Source: Zygnema circumcarinatum SAG 698-1b
Taxonomy: Eukaryota; Plantae; Zygnematophyceae
NCBI GenBank assembly: GCA_037447605.1
Contig: CM074814.1
Location: 1,860,001-1,924,000, forward strand
Length of the DNA: 64,000 nt
Direction of reading: 5' to 3'
This document shows, one piece after another, positions 1,439-52,430 of the stretch. A program made the position numbers and the translations under genes. The notes beneath the pieces are model-generated. The model searched no databases and had not been told where the DNA came from. It worked only from the letters and a program-made list of their open reading frames with translations. Each line of letters begins with the position of its first letter. Position 1 is the stretch's first letter.

Positions 1439-2133
1439 GGGAGGCCGCTTGAGTGAAAGTTGGGTGGGTTATATCGTGTTATGCAATGCAGCTGCTTGTT
1501 TAAGAATTGGGCTTTTTAAGTTGTATTTTTTTTTTAAATGGACATGCGGTAGCGGAGTTGAGCATTGTCCGAGAGAGGTGATGCCTGTGTGCAGCTACAC
1601 GTCCCTTTATGTCCATTTTGCCCTATGCAGCAGCTTGTAGGCGTGGGGAGGTCGAAGGGAGAGAGATAGTTATGACTTAATTACGTTGCATGTGTCCGCC
1701 AATGTTTGTTGATCTGCATTCTAACTTTAAAAACATCTCCTTAAAATCTCAATCTCAATGCTAAAGCAAAATAATTGCAACCAAGCAGACAGAATAAATT
1801 GTGCGTATTCTCAACTGCCGCACACGCAACTAGGAATGCATGCATTGAACAACATCAACATGGAACATTGAACGCTAGAAAGGTTGCAAATCTCTCCTAG
1901 AAAGGTTGGTGGTCCAAGAAGATCTTTGGAGCACGTCACGAGACTCGAACAAGCGACCTCTGCCCCGACCCCCCCTCCATTCAGAACTACAGTACTGTCG
2001 CTCGTCTTCCAACCGGTTTCCGCCACGTGGACTATCTGTCTTATGTGGCGTGTCCCCATTGGTCGACGCCGTTCCGAATGGCCTAGTGTCCTCTTGCCTT
2101 CCCCTTCTCCCTCGCCTGCAGCTGCGGGGCGCC

Positions 2134-5100
2134 ATGGAGGGGGGCCGGCGAAGGGCGCCTGCCGCCATGGCGGGCGTGCAGGGCGTGCTCGGCGCTGCAC
2201 CCGCTCAAAGGCTTGGGCCTGCTGCTGCACCCGCAATACCGAATGCTTGGGGTAAGCCGCCTGGCGCCTCATCTTCTCCCTGGAACTCCGCCGCAGCAGG
2301 TTCAGGGCCACCTCGAGCAGCTCCTGTTGTGCTCCCATCGTGGGAGAGCAGCGTTCCGCCTCGAGCTGACAGCAGCGATGATGATTCGTTCAGTGGAGAC
2401 GAGGACGACGAAGTCGGGTTGCAGGGAGGATCAGAAAAGCGGCGGGCTGGGGTTGAGGAATTGGAAGGTAGCATATTCGGAGGCTATCTACAAGGCAGGG
2501 TACATGAGACAGACGGAAAGGTTTTTGAAGCAGGTTTGGAAAAAATTCGCGACCAGTTGCTTGCGGGACATTCTGGAGCCACAAGATGCTTGATATGCTT
2601 GGAGCGTATCAAAGGCTCGGACCCAGTATGGTCTTGCACCGAGAGTTGCTACTGCATTTTTCACATAGTATGCATACAAGCCTGGGCGCGCCAGTCGGCC
2701 AATGCCGCTGCCGCTCGAGCAGCCAATCAAAATCTTCCCTCTCTGGCTGAGTCAGCAGGCGAAGGCCTTAGCACTAATTCTGCAGGTTTGCACGGTTCAA
2801 GCAGATCAGCAGCTCAGCTGGCAGCTCAGGCTGCTCTGGAAGCAAGCTGGCACTGCCCTAAGTGCAGACATGAGTATTCCCCGGGGGACGTCCCGAAGGT
2901 ATACCGTTGCTTTTGTGGAAAGCAGCGCGACCCGGAATTCAACCCTTGGCTGGCTCCTCACAGCTGCGGAGAAACTTGTGAGAAGAAACTTTCCGAAGGC
3001 TGCGGCCACAAGTGCACTTTGCTCTGTCATCCCGGTCCTTGCCCTCCCTGCCCTCAGCTCATACGTTCCTCTTGTTACTGTGGGAAGAAAAAGGACCTCA
3101 AGCGCTGCGGGCACCGGGAATTTTCGTGTGCTAAGCAATGTCACGGCCAGCTGGCCTGTGGGGTTCACAACTGCGAAGCTATCTGCCATCCAGGAGAATG
3201 CCCTCCATGCCCTAAAAAGAGTGAGTATAGGTGCCGTTGCGGGCAAATTAGTGAAATTAGGAGTTGTGCTGAACGTGACTTCGGCTGCGGACGACAGTGC
3301 GACGCAGAGTATCCCTGTGGCAGGCACCAGTGCGAAAAGATTTGCCATGAGGGGCCCTGTGGTGAGTGTCCTTTATCCGGAAAGAGAAGTTGCCCCTGTG
3401 GAAAGTCCGTGTACAGTGATCTCTCCTGTGACAAGCCGTCACCAACTTGTGGCCGAACTTGCGATAAGCCTTTGGCATGCGGCCGCCATAGATGTCCTGA
3501 ACGCTGCCATACAGGCCCCTGTGCCGACACGTGTCGGCTGGTGATTGCAAAACGCTGTCGGTGTGGAGGACTGTTGAAAGAGGCAAGTTATCGACTCACA
3601 TTTCACCGTTTGTAGTCCGTAAGCAACTTATGGAAGTACGCAGGCAGGAGAATAAGTGTGAAAAGAATATGTTTTGCCATGTAAAGTGCGGACTTTTGTA
3701 GTGTGCTCAAACAGTCATCCGACAGAACAGCCAGTCAAGGCCTTGCCTCGCGCGAACAAGGCGCCTCGTGTCACAGCAAAATCAGCAATCAGCAGACATC
3801 TTTTGTCTCATGCGTATAGTTATAGAGCAGATTACATAAGCTCTCTCTCTAAGGAAGTTAGGCCAAGCCTTGCACAGTTGTTTTGAGGGTTCCATTCCGT
3901 TCGTCTGTAGGGTTTTGTCACTCCATGGCGTCGCACATGTAGTTGACGAAAAAACATAAGATGATCAGATTCGTTGACGGGCTTGGCTTAAAGCAGGTTC
4001 CTTGCAGCCAAGAGCTTCACTGCGAGCGTCGTTGCCAACGATCACGAAACTGTGGGCGGCACATATGCAAACGGCGATGCTGTGATGGGGCGTGTCCTCC
4101 ATGTGCAGAGGTTCTGCCAACATAGACTGCTCCCTATTTGACATCTGTACCACATACATGTGCAAGGCTGCTTGTTTTAATGTTCTAATCGTAACTTTTT
4201 TGTTGGCATTTGACACCTCCTGGGCAGTTCCTTTAGTTTGCTTCATGTGCACACCTTGAGATTATACGATGGTGCTTATTCTGAGAAATGATGTGGATGC
4301 TAACTGGCTCAGGTGTGTGGAAAAAAGCTCCGCTGTGGCAATCATAAATGCCCAGCTCCTTGCCACAGGTGAAGTATTCAGCAGCATATTATACCCAGCA
4401 TAGTTTATTCTGATGTCGCATGGGACCACTAAAATTGTGACCTCCGAAAGTTAGAGCATTCAATCAAGTTACCGTTGTGCTGCTAAAAGCGTGCTTGCTG
4501 CATCCAATGCGCCTGCCTGAACAGTTGTTGGGATTCGTGGGGCTCTGTACAGTGGCCCATGTGCACCTTGCCCCCTCACTGTGCGCATCTCCTGTGCTTG
4601 CGGGAGCACTGCTTTCACTGTGAGTGCAAAAATAATCAAACTGATGAGATGGGATGGAAAGGATAGGTTGCTTCCGGGAAGGAAAGAGACACAGGCCCCT
4701 TTCCGTATGTGGTTGTTGTCTAATGTCGTTTTGTCTGCCACTTATTTTGAGAGTTAACTTCTGCAGCAGTTAGCTAGCTTTGCTCTGATGAACTGTGCAG
4801 GGTGTCAAGGGTGTGTCAGGTTCCATGCGGAGCAGAGAGAGGGCAAAAACCACCAAAATGCTCCAAGCGCTGCACGATTACACAACTGTGCTGTCATGGT
4901 AGCAGCTGCAAGGCAAGTGTATACAGCAATCTCCTATGATTATAAGATAGGCCGGACTTAATGACAATCAAATTGTCAATACAGCTCGCTCAAAACAGAA
5001 ACAGCTCTCTCGAATTAGTATCTCTCGGAGTTGTTTCAACCAAGCATACCAGTAATATGGTCTGATACATGTAGAAGGGCGGTCTCATAGGCTGCTAAAT

Positions 5101-8391: not shown

Positions 8392-9587
8392 CATCCAAAT
8401 AACTCTCCGGAGGCACTGCAGTTTCGTTTATAATGAAGCATACAGTTTCCTTGCGTTGCCTCTATGGATAGAGGTCTTCACCACGAGAGATCGCGGTAGT
8501 TTTGAAACTAATTTGAAAGTTTGTACGATGAAATGCTTTTTTCCTATCAAATTCAACTTCTGTTTTCAGTTTATGCTGCTGCTGCCCTTGGTAAGGGTCT
8601 CATTCAAGGCCGAAATCCTGCATGTCAGCGTCAGCCTCGTTCGGCAACAGGGATGCACAGGCAAAACTCTAGTATCGTAAACTGGCAGTGCCTCCTCTAT
8701 CTCTCCCCTCCCGCTCTCCCTATTCCTCTCCCGCCCTCTGCTCCACCTCCACCTTCGGGTTTTTTGGGTTTTTCTCCATTTCCCTCTCTTTTCTCCTCTC
8801 TCCCCTTTTGAGGCCACGTGTCCAACTTTATTTTGTCTACACGAGCAGAAGAAGCCATGCGTAGTGTTCCACTGTCAAAAAAGACTTCTGCACCTTCAGA
8901 TCGTGGCTTAACGCAAACACCTAGCCTCCTCCCATGTCATGCCCTCCCCAGATTGGACACGCAACGGTGACAACCCGCAGGAGTCGCTCAGCATGCAAAA
9001 TCTGAAACCAAATCGTTTGCAGCCATACTGGAGCTTGTCGACCCACCATTGTCAAGGCCGCAGCATTTCACATTCAGGTCAGGCACATCCGGGGATTACA
9101 TATCTGTGTCATGGACAACTATTTATTTTCATTATTTTGAAAGAAAAAACAACACGAGCTCCGTGCTCCCAGGAGCGGTGCACGCCAATGGGTAGCCTTT
9201 GAACAAATTCCCATCTTCACCACTGGTTTCGGCAGCCGAGGCGGCATTCTGACCAGCACATCTTCCTCGTCGTGCTATTCTGATGAACTCACCAAATAGT
9301 ACATGGAACCCCTAAGCGGCCATCGACCTTCAGAGCACGCAACTGTTCAGCCTGACGACTACAACGACACTATATTACAAAATTTTGAATGCAGGGCTGG
9401 AGTTTGAACATTTAAACTAGAAAAAATCAATAATTTATTCCTAACATGCTCGAGAATTATCGCAGCGTTGCGCATTGTCTGCCGAAGAGGGCAGCTCGCT
9501 CGAACGTTTACCGGGCAATCACATAGCGGGGCCTTGGGCTTTGGGGCTTCGGGGCGTTGGGCGTGGGGGGGGGGGGGCGGCGGGCGG

Positions 9588-11226
9588 CTACTCGGCGGCG
9601 GCTCGCAGCGCGCGGCCCTCGAAGGCGGAGTAGCGGCAGTCGGGCTGCAGCACGTCCGAGGAGACGTAGTCCGCCGGCGCCGCGCCGTCCAGGAAGCCGC
9701 GCCACCGCCCGCCCCCGTCCGCCACGATCGGCCGCTTCAGCGCCGCGCTCAGCCGCTCGAACTTCGCGTTGCGCTCCTCGCGGCCCTCGCGGTACGTCTG
9801 CCCGAGCACGCCATGGATGGCAGCCGTCGTCTGCGCCGCCCAGCCAGGCCCCCCCGCAGCCGCTCAGAACAACCCGCAGGCGGAGCTGGAGCTCTAACGA
9901 GAGCAGGCAGAAGAAAACGAGAGAGAGAGAGAGAGCAGGCAGGCGGGCAAGCGGGCGTTACCTGAATCCAGTTGATGGCGACGCTGATGTGCACTTGCGC
10001 GTCTTCGGGCCGCTGCAGGAGAGGGTGCGCGGGGCGGAGCTCGAGGGCGAGGTCGAGGAGGCCGTCGATGCGCACGGTGTAGCAGTCCACCTCCATGGAG
10101 CCCCTCTTCTTGATGGCGGCGAAGCGGATGGCGAGGCCGCCCGGCAGCGCGGCCTCCTCGCCCACGCGCAGGCGCGGCAGCGTGTTGCCGTCCGCCTCCG
10201 CCAGCGCGAGGAAGCCCTCCGCCCCGCGCGCCGCGCCCGGGCCCGCACGTGCCGCGAGGAGCAGCGAGTGGCGGGCCCCCCCCGCCTCCGTCCAGAGGAG
10301 CCCGAGCTCGCGGATCCACGTGCGCACCTGCCCCTGCTGCTGCACCTTCCCGCCCTCTGCCTCTCCCTCTCCCTCTCCCTCCTCTCGGACCGCGTCCGCG
10401 CGCGTGTCCAGGTAGCCCGTCATCTTCATGTTGACGTGCAGCCGCCGGTCGCTGAGCAGGCAGAAGCTGCGCCCCGGCTGCCCGCCGAAGTCGTAGTGCG
10501 TGCCCTGCGCGCCCTGGAAGTGCGGGTCGTCGCGCGCGAACGGCGGGCACTTCGCGCCCACGCGCGTCTCGTACTGCGCGCCGCACACCGGCCCGCTGCT
10601 GCCGGCGGGGTACATGTAGCAGATGTTCAGCCGCCGCCTGCACCCAGACCCGCCTCCCGCAGTCAGGGAAGCCGCGTCGCGGACCGGGAGGGGAAGGGGG
10701 AGGGAGAGGGAGAGAGCGAGAGGGAGAGAGAGCGCGGGGGCGGGGGTGGGGAGTACTCACGTCTGGATGGACTGCCAGAGGGCGCAGTTCTTGGCCTTCT
10801 TGCAGGCCCGGCAGCACTCGAAGGATGTGTTCGTGGGCTTCACCCTCACTTGCAGCCCGCCCACCATCACAACGCCGTCGAAAGGGCAGTCTTTGTCGAA
10901 CGCGCATAGCGGCGGCAGCTTCGGCACCTGCGCACGCACTCTCCGGGGCGTAAGCGAGAGAGACAGAGAGAATGAGCGAGGAGACGCGGTCTCCGAGGTG
11001 GGACGCTAACCGGGCTCCGACTTGCGACTTAGCCCTCCGCTGCTTTGAACCGCCCGAGTGCCAAGCGAGGCGAGGCTCTCACCGAGAAGTTCCCAACGAT
11101 GCCTCCCGACAGGCACGAGACGCAGCCATTGGGCGACGAGTAGTCGGGACAAGTGGGGGCTGCCGACTGCGCGCTGGCGGCCACAGCCAGCGCCAGCAAC
11201 AGCAAGGCCAAGCGCAGGACCGACAT
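9588..11226 (-). CDS. Secreted Cys-rich PAN/apple-like + root-cap/VWD-like protein, copy A; complement(join(9588..9830,9962..10637,10761..10927,11083..11226)), 409 aa
   Basis: Reverse complement of copy B; signal peptide MSVLRLALLLLALAVAASA, DDPHFQGAQGTHYDFGGQPGRSFCLLSD, IHGVLGQTYR. Confidence 0.85.
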
Positions 11227-11227
11227 G

Positions 11228-12136
11228 ACTGCGAGCACAGGAGACAAGGTCGAAAGTAGAAGGGAAATAACACAGAGTGTGAAAGAGAATACGAGCGAGA
11301 GTAAGAGAGGAAGAGGGAGGGGAGCGAGGGAGAGAGGGGCGAGAGACAGAGTTCTGGAGAGCGGCGACTGGCGAGCAAGTGCTCCCGCTGCCCCCTTGTA
11401 GCGAGCGCGCCGCCCCGCCCCTTGGAGCCCGCCTGGCAGGTGCCGCGCCAGGAGCGGTTCGCGCGGCCAGGGGCGCCGTACGAACATAACGTACGGACCG
11501 ATATACCGTACGGAATGCGCTGACGAAAGGTGCAGAAAGCAGTGGATTTTGGGCCACGCTGGATCCTGTCACCCGCCAGGCAACGAACCCGCGCGTGCCA
11601 CGTGGCGTTTGTAAGAACGACATTGACTTTTGATATGACATTGTTGACGATCATTGACGATTCTGTGCGTGAATATCTCATCGACAGTTGAACGGCGCAG
11701 AACGGTGTGGTTGTAAACATAGAACTCGCTTGGTTAGTGTACGGACAACCCAGTTCAGAGGTCGCGCCAGGCGCTCTGCTGTACAAATTCAAATCTCGAG
11801 ACTGCCTCGTCCGTATGGCAAGGCGTACGGCCAATGTCGGCAATGCTCGACAGCCTGGAAAAACCCTGCGCCGCCTCTGTGCGAATACTTGCATGCCACG
11901 TGGTGCCCTCACGCCGCTACGCGAATACCTGCGCGCCACGTGGCGGCCCGGCTCTGCCGCTATGTACATATGGCCGGGGGCAGCGGATGGAAGGGCAGCA
12001 GGCGCCACCCTCTCTCCCGCAGCCCCACTCGCCCGCCCTCTCTCTCGCCCTGCGCTCCCTCCCCTCTACCTCTCTGTGCTCTTCTGCCGCTCTGCCAACT
12101 CTCTCCTCGCCTCACTCGCCTCCCTCCAGCACAAGC
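11228..12136. promoter_or_regulatory. Bidirectional promoter with three G-box/ABRE-like GCCACGTGG elements (11597, 11895, 11935) and a CCGTAC/GTACGG cluster (about 11476-11512)
   Basis: Lies between two divergent ATGs; motifs read directly; CT-rich leaders on both sides. Confidence 0.6.
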
Positions 12137-12137
12137 C

Positions 12138-13776
12138 ATGTCGGTCCTGCGCTTGGCCTTGCTGTTGCTGGCGCTGGCTGTGGCCGCCAGCGCGCAGTCG
12201 GCAGCCCCCACTTGTCCCGACTACTCGTCGCCCAATGGCTGCGTCTCGTGCCTGTCGGGAGGCATCGTTGGGAACTTCTCGGTGAGAGCCTCGCCTCGCT
12301 TGGCACTCGGGCGGTTCAAAGCAGCGGAGGGCTAAGTCGCAAGTCGGAGCCCGGTTAGCGTCCCACCTCGGAGACCGCGTCTCCTCGCTCATTCTCTCTG
12401 TCTCTCTCGCTTACGCCCCGGAGAGTGCGTGCGCAGGTGCCGAAGCTGCCGCCGCTATGCGCGTTCGACAAAGACTGCCCTTTCGACGGCGTTGTGATGG
12501 TGGGCGGGCTGCAAGTGAGGGTGAAGCCCACGAACACATCCTTCGAGTGCTGCCGGGCCTGCAAGAAGGCCAAGAACTGCGCCCTCTGGCAGTCCATCCA
12601 GACGTGAGTACTCCCCACCCCCGCCCCCGCGCTCTCTCTCCCTCTCGCTCTCTCCCTCTCCCTCCCCCTTCCCCTCCCGGTCCGCGACGCGGCTTCCCTG
12701 ACTGCGGGAGGCGGGTCTGGGTGCAGGCGGCGGCTGAACATCTGCTACATGTACCCCGCCGGCAGCAGCGGGCCGGTGTGCGGCGCGCAGTACGAGACGC
12801 GCGTGGGCGCGAAGTGCCCGCCGTTCGCGCGCGACGACCCGCACTTCCAGGGCGCGCAGGGCACGCACTACGACTTCGGCGGGCAGCCGGGGCGCAGCTT
12901 CTGCCTGCTCAGCGACCGGCGGCTGCACGTCAACATGAAGATGACGGGCTACCTGGACACGCGCGCGGACGCGGTCCGAGAGGAGGGAGAGGGAGAGGGA
13001 GAGGCAGAGGGCGGGAAGGTGCAGCAGCAGGGGCAGGTGCGCACGTGGATCCGCGAGCTCGGGCTCCTCTGGACGGAGGCGGGGGGGGCCCGCCACTCGC
13101 TGCTCCTCGCGGCACGTGCGGGCCCGGGCGCGGCGCGCGGGGCGGAGGGCTTCCTCGCGCTGGCGGAGGCGGACGGCAACACGCTGCCGCGCCTGCGCGT
13201 GGGCGAGGAGGCCGCGCTGCCGGGCGGCCTCGCCATCCGCTTCGCCGCCATCAAGAAGAGGGGCTCCATGGAGGTGGACTGCTACACCGTGCGCATCGAC
13301 GGCCTCCTCGACCTCGCCCTCGAGCTCCGCCCCGCGCACCCTCTCCTGCAGCGGCCCGAAGACGCGCAAGTGCACATCAGCGTCGCCATCAACTGGATTC
13401 AGGTAACGCCCGCTTGCCCGCCTGCCTGCTCTCTCTCTCTCTCTCGTTTTCTTCTGCCTGCTCTCGTTAGAGCTCCAGCTCCGCCTGCGGGTTGTTCTGA
13501 GCGGCTGCGGGGGGGCCTGGCTGGGCGGCGCAGACGACGGCTGCCATCCATGGCGTGCTCGGGCAGACGTACCGCGAGGGCCGCGAGGAGCGCAACGCGA
13601 AGTTCGAGCGGCTGAGCGCGGCGCTGAAGCGGCCGATCGTGGCGGACGGGGGCGGGCGGTGGCGCGGCTTCCTGGACGGCGCGGCGCCGGCGGACTACGT
13701 CTCCTCGGACGTGCTGCAGCCCGACTGCCGCTACTCCGCCTTCGAGGGCCGCGCGCTGCGAGCCGCCGCCGAGTAG
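12138..13776 (+). CDS. Secreted Cys-rich PAN/apple-like + root-cap/VWD-like protein, copy B; join(12138..12281,12437..12603,12727..13402,13534..13776), 409 aa
   Basis: Four exons sum to 1230 nt with GT-AG introns in compatible phase; CCRACKKAKNCALWQ...CY Cys pattern; DPHF and HGVLGQTY motifs of root-cap/LEA-related VWD-like proteins. Confidence 0.85.
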
Positions 13777-14983
13777 CCGCCCGCCGCCCCCCCCCCCCCA
13801 CGCCCAACGCCCCGAAGCCCCAAAGCCCAAGGCCCCGCCATGGCCAGGCATGGCCTGGCAGTGTATTCGAGGCAGATGTAGAATATGTGTGGCTGATGCT
13901 TGTCTTTATAAATTAGTTTTCGTTTTGTATATGTTTGGCCGGAGAAGTGAAGCTGGACGATTAGTTGATTAAGATTGATGCTCCCGTAAAAGAGGAGTGT
14001 TGTAGTTAGAGGTCGAGAGTTGCGAGCAATAGAACTGTGAGAGTGAACAGCATGTGAAGTTCACGATCACCGAATAAATGTACTCAATCAAGATAACAGT
14101 CGTTGCCTTTGAACCCTCTGACCTTCTCTTCCTGTTTGTCATTGCTAGTTTTTTCGTATGGAAGTAGTCCGCTTTCATTTGCAAGAAGCATGGCAGAATT
14201 GTGCGTCGTGGGGTGGATACGTAACCTCATCAGCATCTGGAAAATACACCTCCCCTGCTCGCACTCTGCATCACGGACGAAGGGAGGGGAGATGTGGGCA
14301 AATCTGAAACGTCAAAGGATATTTCTTGGGTAAAAAAAAGTAATGCCAGAGTTTTGCACGAGTCGGCAGAGGGGCTGGGGATGCAGTGGCTTCCCCGCGT
14401 CCTTTGCAACCTCTCTCTCGTCTTTCTTGTAAGTGATGGGAACTCAATAGATTCGTGGAAAGGACTCGTGCAGGGCAACGTGAAGGCAACAGATTCCGCC
14501 CACCCTTAGTGGTTTTGAAGACAGAGGGATGGAGTTGGGGGGGAGGTGTGGGGGGGGGGAGAGGAGGGAGGGGGGGGAAGAGAGCGAAGTTAGAGTTTAT
14601 TTGTTTTTCATTCCATAGTGAGAAAGGAAGATTGGAATACTACCAAAGAAAGTGACACTTTTAGGTGGGAATTCCCAAGTCATAAACGCAACACCTCTTA
14701 CGAATCAGCATAGCATAAAAGGCCAACATGCTGCAAATCACGTCCAATTTTGTGCATTGAACATTTGGTACACGCTTAGTTTGTAGTACAGGTCAAATGT
14801 ACATCAAAAAAACTGCATGCACTCCCCCTGTCTTCAAGAGGAGTATCGTGCACCAGCGAAAGCAGTGCGGGGGAGAGACTGCAAAAAATCTCAGGCATTT
14901 CGCCCATTCAGCATTGCGCTTTATAGGCTATTTCTTGCCAGCTTTCCCTTGCTAGGCGGGAAAAGAATGTACAGAAATCATAT

Positions 14984-46486: not shown

Positions 46487-49400
46487 CTATGGCAGATAAA
46501 GATGTTGGCCTTCGTATATGTAGTTTCTTTCGCAAACCTGCAGGAAGGGTAAGTCTTGTTAGGTAGGGAGAGGGGGGAGAGGGGATGGGGATGGGAGCAT
46601 TAAGCAAAGCAACAAACAATGGAACTTACCTCAGGGTTCAGTTCATAAAATCTGGAGCTAGGATTGCAATAGTGCTCCGGTATGATGCCCGCCAGGCGAT
46701 CTCCAGGCTTCACCACGTACACTCTGTGCACAGATTTGAATCAGAGCCTGGAATGAGTTTATAGAACAACAAGGCAATTTTTTCTCACGATTCGAAATGT
46801 ACGAGCATTACCATTGACTTCATAATATGCTCTCTTCCAGCAAAAATAAGAGGTCAAACGGCTTTCAACTCAACACATTTCAGACACGTCACATACACAT
46901 GGCATGCATCATCAGTTACGGCGTAATGGAGCACATCAGCAAGGGACAGTTCCGTACAGAATGCTGAGATCATTATGCAAAATAGCTTCACTCCAACACC
47001 TATCAGTCGTAACTTTGGAGGTACTGAGCAGTAAGCAGGGGAGAAGGAGCGGAGGAGAGCGGTTCGGGAGCCGGGGAGAAGGTTATAGTCCTAGTGGAGA
47101 GGAACACCTTTTACACTTGCCGGATCAAATGCTTCTTTGACCAGCAATGTGTATATATATATAGAAAGCCATATCAACCACACGCTGTACATAGCAATAT
47201 GCCATTGTATTAGTCAAACGACTGTCCCGAGTTTGACTGTGGATGATTTGGAAAAGTAGTTTGTCAATGGTAGAAACTGCCTGGGGATGCCTGGACAACC
47301 TGCTATAGCGGTGTAAAAAGACAGACTGGCTAACCGGTCAAGATGGTTCGGATGGAGAGGCAGTTTTATCAGACTGCAGTGGGGATTGAAACCTACCCGC
47401 TAGGCCTATGTCTTCTGGCGAAGCACCCCAAAAAGAGCCCACGCGCATGGCACAAGCAGGCCGTAATCGTAAGTCAGAGGATCCCCCAGGCTGCCTCAAT
47501 CCTAAGCCACTGCACAAAACCACCACTATGGCCCCAAACCAGCAGCAACCATCTGCCTTTCTCCAGAGTTCTTCACCATCACTCATAACTCCAAGCACAC
47601 TCAATTCAGACATACACAAAGATCAGTCTCAGAGTCAACCAGAGGCAGACAGTTCCAAAATCAGTGGAGTTCCAAGTCAATAAAAACACGAGCAAGCAAC
47701 TAACCTTCGCTTGCGATTTCCTCTGGGCCAGAAGAAGAGAAGAGCAACAACTATCGCAGCGACACCTCCAGCGACCTGCACAAGGCAAGTATTGAAGGAG
47801 GAGATGATCAGATGTTTCAACGCATAGAATCGGAAAAACCTCGTCATGCTTTTGAGGTGTGAGCTTCAGATTAAGAAGCTGCTATGGTGAAAATTGCACA
47901 TGAGTGTATGGACATTCAACTTCCGGGGAAAGCAAGCAAGAGGATTGAGATGTCAAAGTTGTAAGTTTCAAAACTAACAATAAGTTACGTCTCCTGAGCC
48001 TCCTCTGCCACAGACTATTTCCAGACCACGACATCCAACTCTCCCCCAAAAATCTAAAACCTAACTCCCAAAGGATCTGATTTCCCAAGAGGGTCAATGA
48101 ACTGGTGGCTGCTTGTTTGTAAGATTTTGTGCAAAAACCTGAGTGAGGATTGGCACAGTTTCTTCCTGCTAACATTTGTTTACAGGCGCCTGCTTCATTT
48201 GTAGATACAAAAATGGAAAATGCCCAAGTCGATAGGAAGTGACACTTCTCACCGGGATAGACCTACTAACCTGTTTGACAAGCATGTTCAATGGCTGTTC
48301 CTCTATAGTCGGAGCATCCTGAGTCTGCTTTCTCAAAGCTCCACTGCTGCGGCTTCCATAATCATCGCCCTGAGACATCCCCCAAAATACTTCAGCAACG
48401 AGAAAGTATATGTAAATCTGCCGAATTGTGAAGACCTTGTAATGGGACCTAACTGGACTGAAAGCAGTCAGACATATTATCCTACTAGGATTTGTCCAAG
48501 CGAATTCCGGTTTTCGGTAGCTCTGAGAGCCATTTCCCGAGGAGGAACATCGGTGGAAATGTAGTGAGTGCTGAATAGGTGACGGAAGTCCCTCTTAAGG
48601 GCGTGTGTGTGTGGTTGGTTTCATAAGCGAGGATTTGACACAGCCATCTACTTGTACTTGTTCTTATGGTGAAGAATCTGACTAAAACAGGGAGCAAGAT
48701 AAGTACTAATGGAATAGGCAGAAGGAAAAGGGAACCCTGCCTGGTCACTCATACTTCAGGAGTCAATAAGCCTAACGACACTTTCTAAAGTTCTAGGCCG
48801 ATACCCGTTCCGTCCTATATACTTGCTCTAACAAAGATCAACGAAAAAGATCAGCATGTTTCAGCAGAAAATGGGCAGAGATGAGTGATTGGCCAACACT
48901 TACCACAGAAATTCCCCGTCTGAGAAGCTCTTGTCGCCTTAGCTCCTCCGCCGCGGCAAGCGCTGCAGTCTCATGTTGGAGCCTCTCCGAAGCCTGCTGC
49001 CTAGTCAAGCTTCCAGCAGGGGCTCCCTCCACCTCCTGCAGATTCGCATAGCAGACAAATGAGATATGGGAAACACAAACAAAAGCATACAGCAGAATGT
49101 CTGCGACTGAAGGCAATAATTCTTACAGCGTACCATCTAAAGCAGGTTTTAAGGAAAATATCTAGTCACAAACCCCAAAAGTCTCCTCCACTTATGCTAT
49201 CCAAATTCTCTCCTCACCTTCTTGAGATTTTCGATGGCCTTGATGCGATTCCGCACTTGCTCATATGGAGACGTATCGACCTCAGACTTTCCAGGTGAGC
49301 CCGCACCCACAGCTCCCGCATAGCTGGAACGCACGTCTCCCGAGGAATTAGCTGGAACAGGTGAAGGCCTCTCTCCAATTGGTGGAGAAGATCCGCCAGT

Positions 49401-52178
49401 GGAAGGACTAAAAGTGGATGGAACAGCAGGGCTGTCGGCAAATAAAGTTGGCCTGAGATTGACTGGAGAAGGAGGACTGCGTTCAGGTGAGGAAGTCTGA
49501 ACGAGTGGGGGACTGCTGGATGATACAGGAGGCACACGTTGTGAAGGAGGAGAAGTGGGTGTATCTGGAGAAGGTGCAGGAGCAATGGCTTCTGATGCAG
49601 TAGTTGCAGAAGCAACATTGGCTGCCACAGAGGGGGTGGGCTCTATTGGAGCAGATTTTGGTTGTTCAGAAGCGGCAGCAGCTGCTGCTGTACCATTGGC
49701 TGCCACAGAGGGGGTGGGCTCTAATGGATCAGATTTTGGTTGTTCAGAAGCGGCAGCAGCTGCTGCTGCACCATTGGTTGCCACAGAGGGGGTGGGCTCT
49801 ATTGGAGCAGGATTTGGTTGTTCAGAAGCGGCAGCTGCTGCTGCAGCAGCAGCAGCTGCTGCCTCTTGCTTCTTCTTTGCAGCATTAGCTCGCTGCAAAA
49901 ACGAAAGTATGAAGTATCAGCATGACTTCGTGCATAGTCTTACTGTATTCCAAATGCAATAAGGAAGTGCTGGGCACTACATTAGGCAGTCAAGAGGGAA
50001 TATAGTCAAGATTATAAGGCACGATAGTTGAGCCCGGGAAACGAAAGACCTACCATACAAATGAATGCCAAAAACAGTTTTCACAAACATAGTTGAAATG
50101 CTCACCATTGCTGCAATCTTCGCACGTTCTTCATCGGTAAGAACGAAGGTTGTCTTGACATGAATCCTTCCACCATTGTTGAAGCTCACAAATTCATCTC
50201 GGAACCCTTTTTCTACAATTGACGGCACACTTATTGCTGGCCCACCACAAAAAAAAATTGCCAAGGTCAGGACTGCATGTAAAAAACGACCTACTTGAGA
50301 CTTCCAACATACCTTCTCTCTTGCTCTGTAAAAATCAATGAAATACATAAGATTATAAGTGTACATGGTTCCAGACCTATTCCGACAAATACCAGGGTCA
50401 AAATTCAATGAAGCAGATGCCATTCAAAGAAAACAGAGCATAAGTATATATATTATTTCACATCCTATTATGAGTTTGCAGACAGTGAGGCGGTTGCTAA
50501 TCTGCACAATGTACACTTTTCCTATACTCGCTTCCAAAAAAGATACAATGAGAGTTAAACTACTTACAAGCTTGACCAACTGGGGCTTCAGTCTTCGCGT
50601 CAAATAGCACTAACGTTACAGGCTCTCCCAAATTGAGCACAGGACTGCAACAAAAAAACGGAGCATCCATCATCTAAACGCTTGTACCTAGGGAACCACG
50701 CTTTTTTGTCTTTCCACAAAAAGCTAAACAAGGGTTGATCTAATTTTGCCGAGACATACCTTACAATACTCAAGGACAACACATGCTTTACACGAAAAAT
50801 CCTCTAACTATGAATGTCCGCTGGTAAATCCTCTAACTATGAATGCTCGGTGGTCATTTTGAGAGCCAAGCAGTGCTCCAGAAACACTACTTAAACAATA
50901 TAGGAAAAAAAGCCAAAATAAAACATTAATTTCAGCACAAATGCTGGACATTTTGAAGAAAGGAAAGGACAAGTTTGCATCAACTGGAGTAAAGATTCAA
51001 CCTAGTTCTGCGGGCAAAAAATTACAAGGCAGCTTACAAGTTGAAATCAGAGAGAAATGGGCGAATGGACGATGAGCCCGATGCCGCACCAAACGCAGCT
51101 TGTGCTCCCGTCGCATGTTCGGCTTTTCCCACTTTCACTGAAAGCCAGTCCAAAGACACGGTCCATACCTGACTGATTGCACTTTCACGGTACTAATCAG
51201 AACATATGACTACATGAAGTGGAAAAACCGGGGCCCATTCGAAAACTTGCCGCTCAAAACTTAGAATAATAGATTCTACAACATTTTTGCCTCCACTTGT
51301 GGACCAAGAACAGGTGCAGAAGCTGGCTCTTCTCAAAAGGTTCGTCCATCTGCGGACTCTAATATTTGTTGTAGCCGGAGAGGTCTACATGTGCGGATCT
51401 TTCTCGAGGCTCACATGCACTATTGTCAAAACAGGAAAGCCTATTGCATGCTCAAATGTTCCATTGCAACTGTCAGAAAAATGTACAATGTACTAAGAAA
51501 GCAAGAACTCACCTTTTACAGCATACTTTTTACCCGCCTCCGCTGTTTGACAGGACACACAAAAGTCAGTTTGAGCTCACATAGGACACAAGTTCCTTAC
51601 GAACGGTTCGCTTTACTAATAACTTCCCTCTAAAGAGAGATGTAGCCCAGAAATGCAAACAGAACTCCGTGACAGAGTTGGTCTTGACAAGACCTGGGCG
51701 GCCAGCAACTGCCCGGGCTTCCTGGCTCCTACTCTCTGCCAGCAACTATTGCAGGAGCTCCAATGAATTTCAGTTATTGCGTCAATCGCTGCTCATTGTT
51801 CATGAAATACACTCATCGCCTTTGTACTTCCAAACATGAAAAGGTGTAGTCATTGCCTGGCCCTACAGTCTCGTTGAAATTTCCTCAGATATAAGTACTG
51901 AAACAAAACATTTTGCAGCGCAGAACATTCTGCGCGGAAGGTCCTTACCTCCTGTGTCTGGAAGGTCCACCACCTCCAAAACTGCAGAGGCACAACAGCA
52001 TACAGCGAGTCAACAGTGACGGCAATGCTCAAACAGGACAGTACTCCCGCCAACAAGAGCCAACTGTAACGAGCTGCACGCCCTGCATTAAGCTCTGCAG
52101 CAAGAAAAGGCAACCTTGCGAATCTAAAAAGGTCTAAGAGGAGAGCTGCTCACCCGTAACCCTAATGCTGCCCGGCAT
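46487..52178 (-). CDS. Membrane protein: N-terminal C2-like domain, Ala/Pro/Ser-rich linker, coiled coil, one TM helix, C-terminal LysM domain
   Basis: Start MPGSIRVT; IVEKGFRDEFVSFNNGGRIHVKTTFVLTDEERAKIAAM; TM VAGGVAAIVVALLFFW (47705..47775); LysM VYVVKPGDRLAGII...FYELNPE-VCERNYIYEGQHLYLP (46630..46723, 46487..46537); splice phases checked from the 50.1-kb exon to the stop. Confidence 0.75.
49610..49845. repeat. Three 78-bp coding repeats (SEQPxxxPxEPTPSVAxNGxAAAAAA)
   Basis: TTGTTCAGAAGCGGCAG recurs at 78-bp spacing inside ORF 49197..49898. Confidence 0.85.
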
Positions 52179-52380: not shown

Positions 52381-52430
52381 ACAGGGGGGGGGGGGGGGGG
52401 NNNNNNNNNNGGGGGGGGGGGGGGGGGGGG
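52381..52430. other. Assembly gap (10 N at 52401-52410) inside a poly-G run in a divergent promoter
   Basis: N bases flanked by long G homopolymers. Confidence 0.95.

Follow-up and report, generated by a model that had tools for sequence, protein, structure and literature searches.

[quoted passage not shown] DipM, which joins LysM repeats to an M23 peptidase in glaucophytes, charophytes and moss, is required for chloroplast division and is located on the plastid peptidoglycan of the intermembrane space (PMC4015805), and chloroplast division in the zygnematophyte Closterium depends on peptidoglycan (PMC3398972). A 'C2+LysM' combination has also been reported from Chlamydomonas and Physcomitrella, with loss in angiosperms (Zhang et al., 2009; PMC2728734).

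Here we describe a gene of Zygnema circumcarinatum SAG 698-1b, located in a window of 64,000 nucleotides (contig CM074814.1; all coordinates below are those of the window), whose product is a 505-aa single-pass membrane protein with an N-terminal C2 domain, of the type that binds lipids, a disordered linker of ~300 aa, a transmembrane (TM) segment, the basic cluster RGNRKRR and, at the very C-terminus, one LysM domain (aa 459-505), of the type that binds sugar polymers. That this architecture is combined with a cytosolic N-terminus and an exoplasmic C-terminus is very probable.

PPASP and the Zygnema protein are both membrane proteins of streptophytes that have a single TM segment, a single LysM and no transit peptide. 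For PPASP, however, nothing beyond an N-terminal TM segment and a C-terminal LysM has been reported, whereas 430 aa of C2 domain and linker precede the TM segment of the Zygnema protein. Moreover, mosses have three copies of PPASP and eudicots with the full pathway carry it as well, while the LysM of the present family is missing from the tested mosses and angiosperms, so that, given the moss orthologues, its presence does not coincide with a full peptidoglycan pathway. The LysM motifs of PpLysMe2 and SmLysMe1, which we tentatively take to be of the PPASP type, score only ~2 bits against the LysM profile of the present family.

The protein of Zhang et al. may be a different one: the N-terminal and LysM strings of the present family are not in the sequence supplement of that study (PMC2728734), the moss members found here lack LysM, and no chlorophyte relative is among the matches of a search with exon 6. 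DipM shares the LysM domain and acts on plastid peptidoglycan, but it is a soluble protein derived from cyanobacteria, with several LysM repeats and a hydrolase domain and with neither C2 domain nor membrane anchor; no LytM/M23 peptidase domain of the DipM/NlpD type was found in any of our Pfam scans. LysM receptor kinases and LYP/CEBiP have the LysM fold and recognize GlcNAc polymers at membranes; they carry a signal peptide, an ectodomain of three LysM and, as a further part, either a kinase or a GPI anchor, all of which are missing from the Zygnema protein, for which sequence and Pfam scans gave a single LysM and neither a signal peptide nor a kinase domain. A parallel in layout, given the topology argued for below, is with PDV1 and PDV2 of land-plant plastid division, in which a cytosolic N-terminal part and one outer-envelope TM segment are followed by a short intermembrane-space domain that reads a partner. 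What PDV tails bind is ARC6/PARC6 and not a glycan, and both C2 and LysM are missing from these proteins.

Gene structure and domain architecture

The exon chain, rebuilt from the sequence, comprises 12 exons on the minus strand from 52178 to 46487 with every intron GT..AG (Table 1), and gives a coding sequence of 1518 nt that ends in a TAG stop codon at 46489-46487. Exon 10 (...ALLFFWPRGNRKR) stops 2 nt into a codon, and the resulting phase 2 intron leads into exon 11, which splices to exon 12; the joined exons 10-12 read R-VYVVKPGDRLAGIIPEHYCNPSSRFYELNPE followed by VCERNYIYEGQHLYLP and the stop. An intron-less Logan contig from a related alga (L001; run SRR8128902; product P0002) follows exons 4-12 colinearly, with ~85% nucleotide identity in the exons. 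The phase 2 intron from the TM exon to two small LysM exons, proposed in the preliminary description together with the junctions 47705/46723 and 46630/46537, proved exact; L001 spans both junctions at precisely those bases, and P0002 ends in the same LysM. The 78-bp repeat stretch of exon 7 has no nucleotide match in L001.

Table 1. Features of the Zygnema gene, in window coordinates
Feature	Position	Strand	Remarks
Exon 1	52154..52178	-	ATG and MPGSIRVT, start of C2 strand 1; GT donor; M1-P2-G3 invariant in 16 orthologues
Exon 2	51949..51981	-	C2 domain; joined VLEVVDLPDTG agrees with orthologue N-termini
Exon 3	51513..51542	-	C2 domain; from exon chain and orthologue comparison
Exon 4	51038..51137	-	C2 domain; L001 colinear at 51131-51038
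Exon 5	50568..50644	-	C2 domain; P0002 agrees across the joins of exons 4, 5 and 6
Exon 6	50106..50236	-	C2 end and start of conserved helix FVLTDEERAKIAAM; L001 aligns at 50236-50112
Exon 7	49218..49892	-	Ala/Pro/Ser-rich disordered linker
78-bp x 3 in-frame tandem repeat	49612..49848	-	26-aa unit, within exon 7; 92% matches
Linker motif VRNRIKAIE	49230..49256	-	aa 345-353; short, conserved
Exon 8	48904..49035	-	Charged segment, probably helical; L001 aligns at 49037-48926
Exon 9	48271..48369	-	Linker, ending ...PLNMLVKQ; P0002 counterpart ...PLNMIVKQ
Exon 10	47705..47775	-	Sole hydrophobic segment VAGGVAAIVVALLFFW, aa 435-452, and basic cluster PRGNRKR(R); L001 aligns up to 47705
Exon 11	46630..46723	-	First two-thirds of LysM; 61.5 bits against a background of <=4.5 bits
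Exon 12	46487..46537	-	Last third of LysM and stop codon; 30.2 bits; junction identical in L001 cDNA

The gene is real, of expressed type and selectively constrained. Between the Zygnema protein and P0002, 46 of 47 LysM residues are identical, compared with 85/110 in the C2 domain and 155 of 263 aligned residues in the linker. Because its codon changes are also 18 synonymous to 1 non-synonymous, the LysM is, judging by these comparisons, the part under the strongest purifying selection.

Several lines of sequence and model evidence identify the C-terminal module as a LysM domain, in keeping with the complete LysM-like module described earlier. In the Pfam search that had been proposed as a check, the spliced 47 aa cover the whole of the LysM model PF01476 (1-43/43), although at 16.3 bits (E 0.0097) they remain below the 20.9 cut-off on their own, a value attained by the Klebsormidium (23.6 bits) and Selaginella (20.9) orthologues. 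The Zygnema LysM scores 85.8 bits with a LysM profile made from eight orthologues, the closest relative left out, and 2000 shuffles reach at most 9.5, which together with the full-length Pfam coverage places the match far beyond chance. The best matches of the family LysM profile in the PDB are all LysM chains (E 1.4e-6 to 4e-3; a few weak non-LysM matches have E>0.1), headed by Kbp (1.4e-6) and SafA (3.4e-6) and including LytN and LytE. An AF2 model of P0002:376-445, whose LysM differs from that of Zygnema at a single residue, has the predicted order beta-alpha-alpha-beta, with strands at 23-26 and 66-69 and helices between (pLDDT 74.8 overall, ~85 across the domain); nearly all of its 40 Foldseek matches are LysM, but with E 0.3-8 they are non-significant for so small a model. 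A Cys pair (YCNP...EVCERN) is kept in the algal orthologues, and the liverwort proteins also have two Cys.

The C2-like N-terminus noted earlier likewise has the C2 fold. Single exons of the window gave no match to Pfam C2 (PF00168), and orthologues scored 14-19 bits, under the threshold of 22, over residues 3-75; the family C2 profile nonetheless matched C2 chains in the PDB (9bkw, 6.3e-6; Munc13-1 C2B, 0.0027; MCTP2, 0.0048). The AF2 model is a beta-sandwich (pLDDT 84.6, pTM 0.74) with 140 Foldseek matches at E<=1e-3, of which the best 50 all contain C2 domains at a probability of 1.00, with TM-scores of up to ~0.73 among the matches listed; model and matches agree with an eight-stranded C2 sandwich resembling the C2 domains of E-Syt, MCTP and Munc13. 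A Ca2+-dependent C2 type appears to be ruled out by an incomplete set of acidic ligands: read from alignments, the Zygnema protein keeps at most two of the five in loops 1 and 3, and relative to Munc13-1 C2B, Lys or Val stands in place of the SDPY Asp, while of the Asp residues in loop 3 only the first (LLD; LFD in Zygnema) is kept.

No Pfam domain was found in the exon 7 linker, whose short motif recurs in the form [S]VKx[KR]IxA[FILY]E in P0002, Klebsormidium, Diphasiastrum, Ginkgo and two LysM-less relatives (P0029 and P0030).

Distribution of the LysM domain in streptophytes

With exon 6 as query, 33 relatives were retrieved at E<=1e-3. By sequence comparison the gene belongs to a streptophyte-wide family, of which it is the zygnematophyte-type orthologue; databases carry the family as uncharacterised, under automatic names only, and no functional study of any member was found in the literature. 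Members share a C2 domain beginning MPGxIxVxVLE, a long disordered linker, a KQV(L/A)GGA... TM segment and a 'WP(R/K)' motif. The linker of the database orthologues is highly variable in length and sequence (395 to 1289 aa), and the threefold 26-aa repeat is the Zygnema copy's own.

LysM is present in family members of Klebsormidium (K. nitens GAQ87986.1, 'LysM domain containing protein'), zygnematophytes (unnamed products of Closterium among them), liverworts (Riccia KAL2612692.1/KAL3680369.1) and lycophytes (Selaginella XP_024528382.1, Diphasiastrum KAJ7296572.1). Its consensus positions (G-D/E-x-L, LNP, IYxGQxLxLP) are retained across streptophyte orthologues, a divergence of ~700 My. The LysM of the Ginkgo orthologue is degenerate, and no LysM exon was found within 10 kb downstream of three Ceratodon loci and one Physcomitrium locus or of two angiosperm loci, in Striga and Dionaea. 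Database members from mosses that lack LysM are Ceratodon KAG0565954.1 and KAG0571603.1 and Physcomitrium XP_024384465.1. As the preliminary description stated for angiosperm proteins, seed-plant-type relatives (Striga GER35982.1, here P0028; P0029; P0030) terminate 13-17 aa past the TM segment. The gene tree agrees with the species tree, and on this distribution LysM is best read as ancestral in the family and lost or degraded several times.

The preliminary description had further suggested that LysM tracks the retention of peptidoglycan. In this form the idea is not supported by the moss orthologues, which have no LysM even though plastid peptidoglycan has its reference case in mosses. Similarly, nearly the whole Mur pathway is kept in many eudicots (PMC4815162, table S5), in contrast to the absence of LysM at both angiosperm loci examined. 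Because lineage losses are few, the LysM/peptidoglycan pattern carries little statistical weight.

Topology, membrane targeting and the LysM ligand

The protein has a single hydrophobic cluster, at aa 428-453 of 505, with a short, Gly/Ala-rich core of ~16-18 residues and flanking charges of -3 on the N-terminal and +5 on the C-terminal side, so that the basic cluster noted earlier after the TM segment is indeed present. Klebsormidium, Selaginella and Ginkgo have a C-flank charge of +4 or +5, whereas that of Riccia is only +1 and that of Diphasiastrum 0, although both carry LysM. Comparison with orthologues gave no N-terminal signal peptide, and a cleavable presequence is absent because Met1-Pro2-Gly3 is invariant and starts C2 strand 1, as the earlier claim of no signal or transit peptide implied. 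A single TM segment near the C-terminus, the lack of an N-terminal signal and a presumably cytosolic N-terminus recall tail-anchored proteins, whose luminal tail is classically ~30-40 aa or less. Since the part beyond the TM segment exceeds this (54-69 residues in LysM-bearing members, 13-23 in LysM-less ones), we term the protein tail-anchor-like. We infer that C2 domain and linker are cytosolic and that LysM lies across the membrane, through tail-anchored or PDV-type insertion; the organelle-type tail signal and topology first proposed for this gene are reasonable.

Basic tails can direct proteins to more than one organelle, peroxisomes included. [quoted passage not shown] The acidic N-flank, basic C-flank and modest TM segment together point to an organelle outer membrane over the ER or plasma membrane.

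A link of the protein to chloroplast peptidoglycan is plausible. In these algae no LysM ligand other than plastid peptidoglycan is known to lie behind a membrane of this kind, and we therefore tentatively propose, at somewhat less than even probability, an outer-envelope anchor with LysM on plastid peptidoglycan. Inserted in the outer envelope of the chloroplast by its TM segment, the protein would use its LysM to hold the peptidoglycan layer from within the intermembrane space, and lipids or partner proteins would be bound by the C2 domain and the linker motif in the cytosol, so that the anchor would couple the peptidoglycan wall to the cytosolic face. Several observations weigh against this mechanism, including the absence of LysM in mosses, the weak or absent basic cluster of Riccia and Diphasiastrum, a post-TM part too long for a classical tail anchor, the use of basic tails by mitochondria, a Cys pair with the potential for a disulfide of the kind seen in proteins of the secretory pathway, a best PDB LysM match (Kbp) that is a non-glycan binder, and the Foldseek E-values of the small LysM model.

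Somewhat unlikely, though a serious alternative, is an ER or ER-derived membrane protein whose LysM would be luminal or, after trafficking, apoplastic, with a cytosolic C2 domain that touches another membrane or a signalling partner; its ligand would be chitin or bacterial peptidoglycan fragments, as for a receptor, or else a GlcNAc glycan of endogenous origin, for instance the core of N-glycans. The characterised plant LysM proteins (LYK, LYP/CEBiP, LysMe) belong to the secretory pathway or apoplast (PMC2728734; PMC6207691), and C2 proteins with TM segments, such as MCTPs and synaptotagmins, are ER-plasma-membrane tethers (PMC6680132), in line with the resemblance of the C2 model to E-Syt, MCTP and Munc13 and with the conserved Cys pair. 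The missing signal peptide, however, argues against this placement, as do flank charges opposite to those that favour insertion into the ER with a luminal C-terminus and a single LysM with neither kinase nor GPI signal. Spans of plasma-membrane proteins are generally longer than the hydrophobic core found here, and a LysM near-invariant between two algae suits an endogenous ligand better than a microbial arms race.

It is improbable that the protein is instead a mitochondrial or peroxisomal outer-membrane anchor, or that its LysM fold has a non-glycan role (protein-protein contact or ion binding), in which case LysM would say nothing on peptidoglycan. The same C-flank and tail features suit mitochondria as well as the plastid outer envelope, and one study describes basic tails with dibasic motifs that send tail-anchored proteins of plants to the outer membrane of mitochondria (PMC4154396), yet no LysM ligand is known in mitochondria or peroxisomes. 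Similarly, a non-glycan role would agree with the K+-binding protein Kbp as best-scoring solved LysM and with LysM loss in mosses despite retained peptidoglycan, but not with the LysM consensus positions kept across streptophytes.

Finally, that the LysM exons are a chance frame or part of another transcript, the protein ending after the TM exon as in angiosperms, is extremely improbable and for practical purposes refuted by the junctions in L001, the codon changes, the profile score and the same C-terminus in six genera (Gonatozygon, Closterium, Klebsormidium, Riccia, Selaginella and Diphasiastrum). An additional short isoform ending before LysM may exist.

Gene structure and the C-terminal LysM module

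The C2–TM–LysM gene of Zygnema circumcarinatum was rebuilt as a minus-strand chain of 12 exons with GT-AG at every intron, and the joined exons form a coding sequence of 1518 nt, or 505 codons (see table). Spliced translation of exons 10-12 gives VYVVKPGDRLAGIIPEHYCNPSSRFYELNPE up to the split codon, continues as VCERNYIYEGQHLYLP and then stops, and the junctions proposed in the preliminary description (47705 to 46723 and 46630 to 46537) match this chain exactly. Exon 6 alone, searched against 1.84 billion representative proteins, returned 33 relatives, the closest of which (P0002; 88% identity over exon 6) is encoded by an 1851-nt Logan cDNA contig of a related alga (run SRR8128902). The contig runs colinear with exons 4-12 of the window at ~85% nucleotide identity, lacks the introns and crosses both junctions at the exact predicted bases.

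Between the window protein and P0002, 46 of the 47 LysM residues are identical, with 18 synonymous codon changes and one non-synonymous, while identity reaches 85/110 residues in the C2 domain and 155/263 in the linker; codon by codon, the LysM module is the most constrained part of the protein. Against a profile built from eight more distant orthologues, P0002 excluded, the window LysM scores 85.8 bits, and 2000 shuffles of it score at most 9.5. Taken together, the junction-spanning cDNA, the codon constraint and the profile score indicate that the LysM exons are genuine coding sequence on which purifying selection acts, upholding the exon structure and C-terminal LysM first read from the genomic sequence.

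Features of the window, with coordinates
Feature	Position (nt)	Strand	Description
C2–TM–LysM gene	52178-46487	-	12 exons
Exon 10	47775-47705	-	sole hydrophobic segment; last codon cut after two bases
Exons 11 and 12	46723-46630, 46537-46487	-	finish the exon-10 split codon
Exon-7 repeat	49612-49848	-	78-bp unit, three times in frame, 92% matches
Linker motif	49230-49256	-	[S]VKx[KR]IxA[FILY]E, aa 345-353
Assembly gap	52402-52411		10 N, in a poly-G/poly-C run ~225 bp upstream of the gene's ATG
Head-to-head neighbour	from 52486	+	starts MGKAKKTRRFAEVKRLLAPRELRE, then GT donor
Inverted repeat	9522-11230, 12134-13842		1709-nt arms, 100% complementary, 903-nt spacer
Zinc-finger ORF	1906-3612	+	569 aa; four NF-X1-type zinc fingers (PF01422, E 2.5e-13)

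The 47 spliced residues cover the whole Pfam LysM model (positions 1-43 of 43); on their own they score 16.3 bits (E 0.0097), below the curated cut-off of 20.9; the Klebsormidium and Selaginella orthologues reach the Pfam threshold. Taken singly, no window exon matched Pfam. A family TM-plus-LysM profile searched against all PDB sequences found LysM domains as its best matches throughout, including Kbp/YgaU (1.4e-6), SafA (3.4e-6), LytN, LytE, Thermus NlpC/P60 LysM, CVNH-LysM and MltD. Modelled with AlphaFold2, the C-terminus of P0002 shows the beta-alpha-alpha-beta order (pLDDT ~85 over the domain), and LysM domains make up nearly all of the 40 Foldseek matches listed for it, with E-values of 0.3-8 that fall short of significance for a domain this small.

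Family architecture and LysM distribution

At the other end of the protein, the family profile of the N-terminal domain matches C2 domains in the PDB (a Trichomonas C2 at 6.3e-6, Munc13-1 C2B, MCTP2), and its model is a beta-sandwich followed by a helix (pLDDT 84.6, pTM 0.74). Foldseek returned 140 matches to this model at E<=1e-3, and all 50 of the 50 matches listed are C2-containing entries, among them intersectin-2, E-Syt, MCTP2, Munc13, otoferlin, PLD-alpha and CAR proteins, with TM-scores up to ~0.73 among those listed. These PDB matches and models agree with the early domain calls, C2-like at the N-terminus and LysM at the C-terminus. The aligned sequences have another residue in place of the loop-1 'SDPY' aspartate, and only the first of the loop-3 aspartates is conserved, which points to a C2 fold whose canonical Ca2+ site is missing. 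The Pfam C2 model stays subthreshold on family orthologues (14-19 bits), and databases often leave them unnamed for this reason.

Common to all members are an invariant M-P-G start, a C2 domain ending in FVL(S/T)(D/E)EER.KI..MR, and a long, low-complexity and poorly conserved linker, over total lengths of 395-1289 aa; the TM is preceded by 'KQV(L/A)GGA' and usually followed by 'WP(R/K)'. Inside a linker that otherwise cannot be aligned, the motif [S]VKx[KR]IxA[FILY]E is kept from Klebsormidium to Ginkgo (the window protein, P0002, P0024, P0026, P0031, P0029 and P0030). By a hand estimate, these seven occurrences compare with ~0.02 expected by chance, and the motif is likely a docking site for a cytosolic partner. 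Exon 7 carries a tandem repeat whose 26-aa unit reads ...AAAAAASEQPKS.P.EPTPSVAANG; the related cDNA has no nucleotide match across it, so the repeat may be a recent expansion within the disordered linker.

Among algae, the window protein, P0002 and the members from Gonatozygon kinahani (P0006; run ERR2041121, identified in PMC13730384), Closterium and Klebsormidium nitens carry a C-terminal LysM, as do two Riccia liverworts, Selaginella and one Diphasiastrum paralogue among land plants. The module is recognisably degraded in Ginkgo (P0031) and in the other Diphasiastrum paralogue (P0021), and missing from Physcomitrium, three Ceratodon genes, Striga and two transcript-derived relatives (P0029, P0030) that branch near Ginkgo. 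The decayed modules remain in frame, e.g., HYFIQKGEESSSILRGQSEDTNARISKPKSKDLLYPGEHLILL, and appear to be intermediate stages of a loss that mosses and angiosperms have completed. Scans with tblastn and HMMs over six-frame translations of six LysM-less loci (four moss, Striga and Dionaea), 10 kb downstream included, found no hidden LysM exon above background (<=10 bits); the two window exons reach 61.5 and 30.2 bits with this LysM profile. The C2-domain tree follows the species tree and groups P0002 with the window protein as the sister of Closterium plus Gonatozygon (support 100/98). The window gene is a new zygnematophyte-type member of an existing, uncharacterised family. By this distribution LysM is ancestral in the family and has disappeared or decayed in mosses and in seed plants at the least.

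The family sampling covers streptophyte algae, Riccia liverworts, mosses, lycophytes, Ginkgo, Striga and Dionaea, and does not extend to ferns, hornworts, Marchantia, other gymnosperms or Arabidopsis. Among other queries, the whole of P0002 returned only Closterium, with low-complexity words dominating, residues 1-135 of P0016 only P0016 and its own isoform, and alignment A1 only its first sequence and an isoform. A terminal domain lost repeatedly as two tiny 3' exons disappeared, an event easily missed in annotation, makes the family a clean case of its kind, and its 3'-end annotation is unreliable. Two neighbouring gene models, one on Ceratodon chr7 (L003 13116-13561; a 67-aa product, 118 bp downstream of a family member) and a '454-aa' Dionaea model full of stops read straight through (L009 17333-18858), look like split-off pieces of the adjoining family gene. 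All database names are automatic ('LysM domain containing protein', 'C2 domain-containing protein', 'uncharacterized protein'). Striga asiatica GER35982.1 is called a 'phosphoglucosamine mutase family protein', has no such domain, and papers under that name concern genuine mutases, so the label looks like a propagated mis-annotation. Our literature search found no functional study of the family; with Arabidopsis outside the sampling, a characterised angiosperm member may exist.

Membrane topology and candidate location

Hydrophobic residues cluster only once in the window protein, at aa 428-453, and 54-56 residues follow. The N-terminus of the protein is C2 strand 1, invariant from Met1 onward, and therefore cannot be a cleavable presequence, in keeping with the initial view that signal and transit peptides are lacking; we infer a cytosolic N-terminus with LysM across the membrane as the only plausible layout. 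The net charge is -3 in the 12 residues before the cluster and +5 in the 12 after it (WPRGNRKRR). In tail-anchored proteins of the chloroplast outer envelope, a net positive C-terminal sequence contributes to targeting, sometimes with an RK/ST motif (PMC8836251), and the tails of LysM-less relatives match this type (NRRSSTLQRSRSK; NRRNLSVHQKSKQRKRK). Mitochondrial outer-membrane anchors are also reported to carry such tail features (PMC4154396), and the basic cluster is reduced to a weak +1 in Riccia and missing from Diphasiastrum (0); the case for envelope targeting is therefore no more than suggestive.

Mosses are known to have plastid peptidoglycan, and its presence in charophyte algae, liverworts and lycophytes is inferred. 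Because it is, to our knowledge, the sole LysM ligand behind an organelle outer membrane in these lineages, we chose as a tentative but possible reading an outer-envelope anchor: the TM would hold the protein in the chloroplast outer envelope, LysM would bind plastid peptidoglycan, and the cytosolic C2 domain and linker would engage lipids or proteins. We know of almost no host proteins that touch this layer from the outer-envelope side, and of almost nothing on how it connects with the division machinery in the cytosol. Conserved and single-copy-like, with its C2 domain predicted in the cytosol and its LysM on the far side of one membrane, the present protein is a concrete candidate for such contact. 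In Closterium, inhibitors of peptidoglycan synthesis block chloroplast division (PMC3398972), and the LysM-bearing hydrolase DipM is located on the peptidoglycan layer of the intermembrane space (PMC4015805).

The tether idea has been published for a differently built protein, PPASP, which consists of an N-terminal TM and a LysM, occurs only in streptophytes with a (near-)complete peptidoglycan pathway, and was proposed to lie in the outer chloroplast membrane, contacting GlcNAc (van Baren et al., 2016; PMC4815162). Candidate PPASP/LysMe-type LysM motifs, a set without true PPASP sequences, scored 2-21 bits against the family's LysM profile, no better than bacterial LysMs. A 'C2+LysM' architecture was tabulated for Chlamydomonas and Physcomitrella and as lost in angiosperms (Zhang et al., 2009; PMC2728734); the N-terminal and LysM strings of our family are missing from that paper's sequence supplement, and it may be a different protein. 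The present architecture is a variant among known LysM membrane proteins. A plastid-peptidoglycan tether is a reasonable and testable hypothesis built on indirect signals; it has a conceptual precedent in print and a clear counter-example in mosses. The preliminary description had further suggested that LysM tracks peptidoglycan retention. Its premise that seed-plant relatives end directly after the TM holds for the examples available; the correlation itself does not, since mosses, with the best-documented plastid peptidoglycan, have lost LysM. Many eudicots keep nearly the whole Mur pathway (PMC4815162, table S5). With few independent losses on the tree, this co-distribution carries little evidential weight either way.

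The main rival, itself rather doubtful, would be an ER-type membrane protein whose LysM faces the lumen or the apoplast. The secretory and apoplastic pathway hosts most characterised plant LysM proteins, C2-TM proteins typically serve as ER-plasma-membrane tethers, and two LysM cysteines are conserved in the algal orthologues, with two in liverworts as well; however, the TM is short, its flanking charges are opposite to those favouring ER insertion with a luminal C-terminus, and the LysM is extremely conserved. Should the protein prove to belong to the ER or apoplast, it would represent a new, minimal kind of membrane protein with LysM among algae related to land plants. Most of the remaining probability falls to a mitochondrial or peroxisomal anchor, for which the shared tail features speak, or to a non-glycan role of LysM.

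As for the outer-envelope anchor, a wider and improbable version makes the family an ancestral streptophyte coupler that, across the outer envelope, ties plastid peptidoglycan to the cytosol. In the intermembrane space LysM would take hold of the wall; on the cytosolic side C2 and the conserved motif SVKxKIxAFE would attract lipids or division/positioning factors, and the family would be a functional counterpart of the PDV plastid-division proteins that reads glycan, its LysM dispensable independently in mosses and seed plants.

Other features of the window

The start of the head-to-head neighbour presumably resembles the N-terminus of rRNA-processing Fcf1/Utp24, and the two genes would have a promoter region of ~300 bp in common. 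The inverted repeat lies where the window is richest in GC (66-69%), and both of its arms hold a 450-aa ORF with no Pfam match; it reflects either a palindromic duplication of very recent date or an artefact of the assembly. The zinc-finger ORF is likely to be one large exon of a gene for an NF-X1-like transcription factor.
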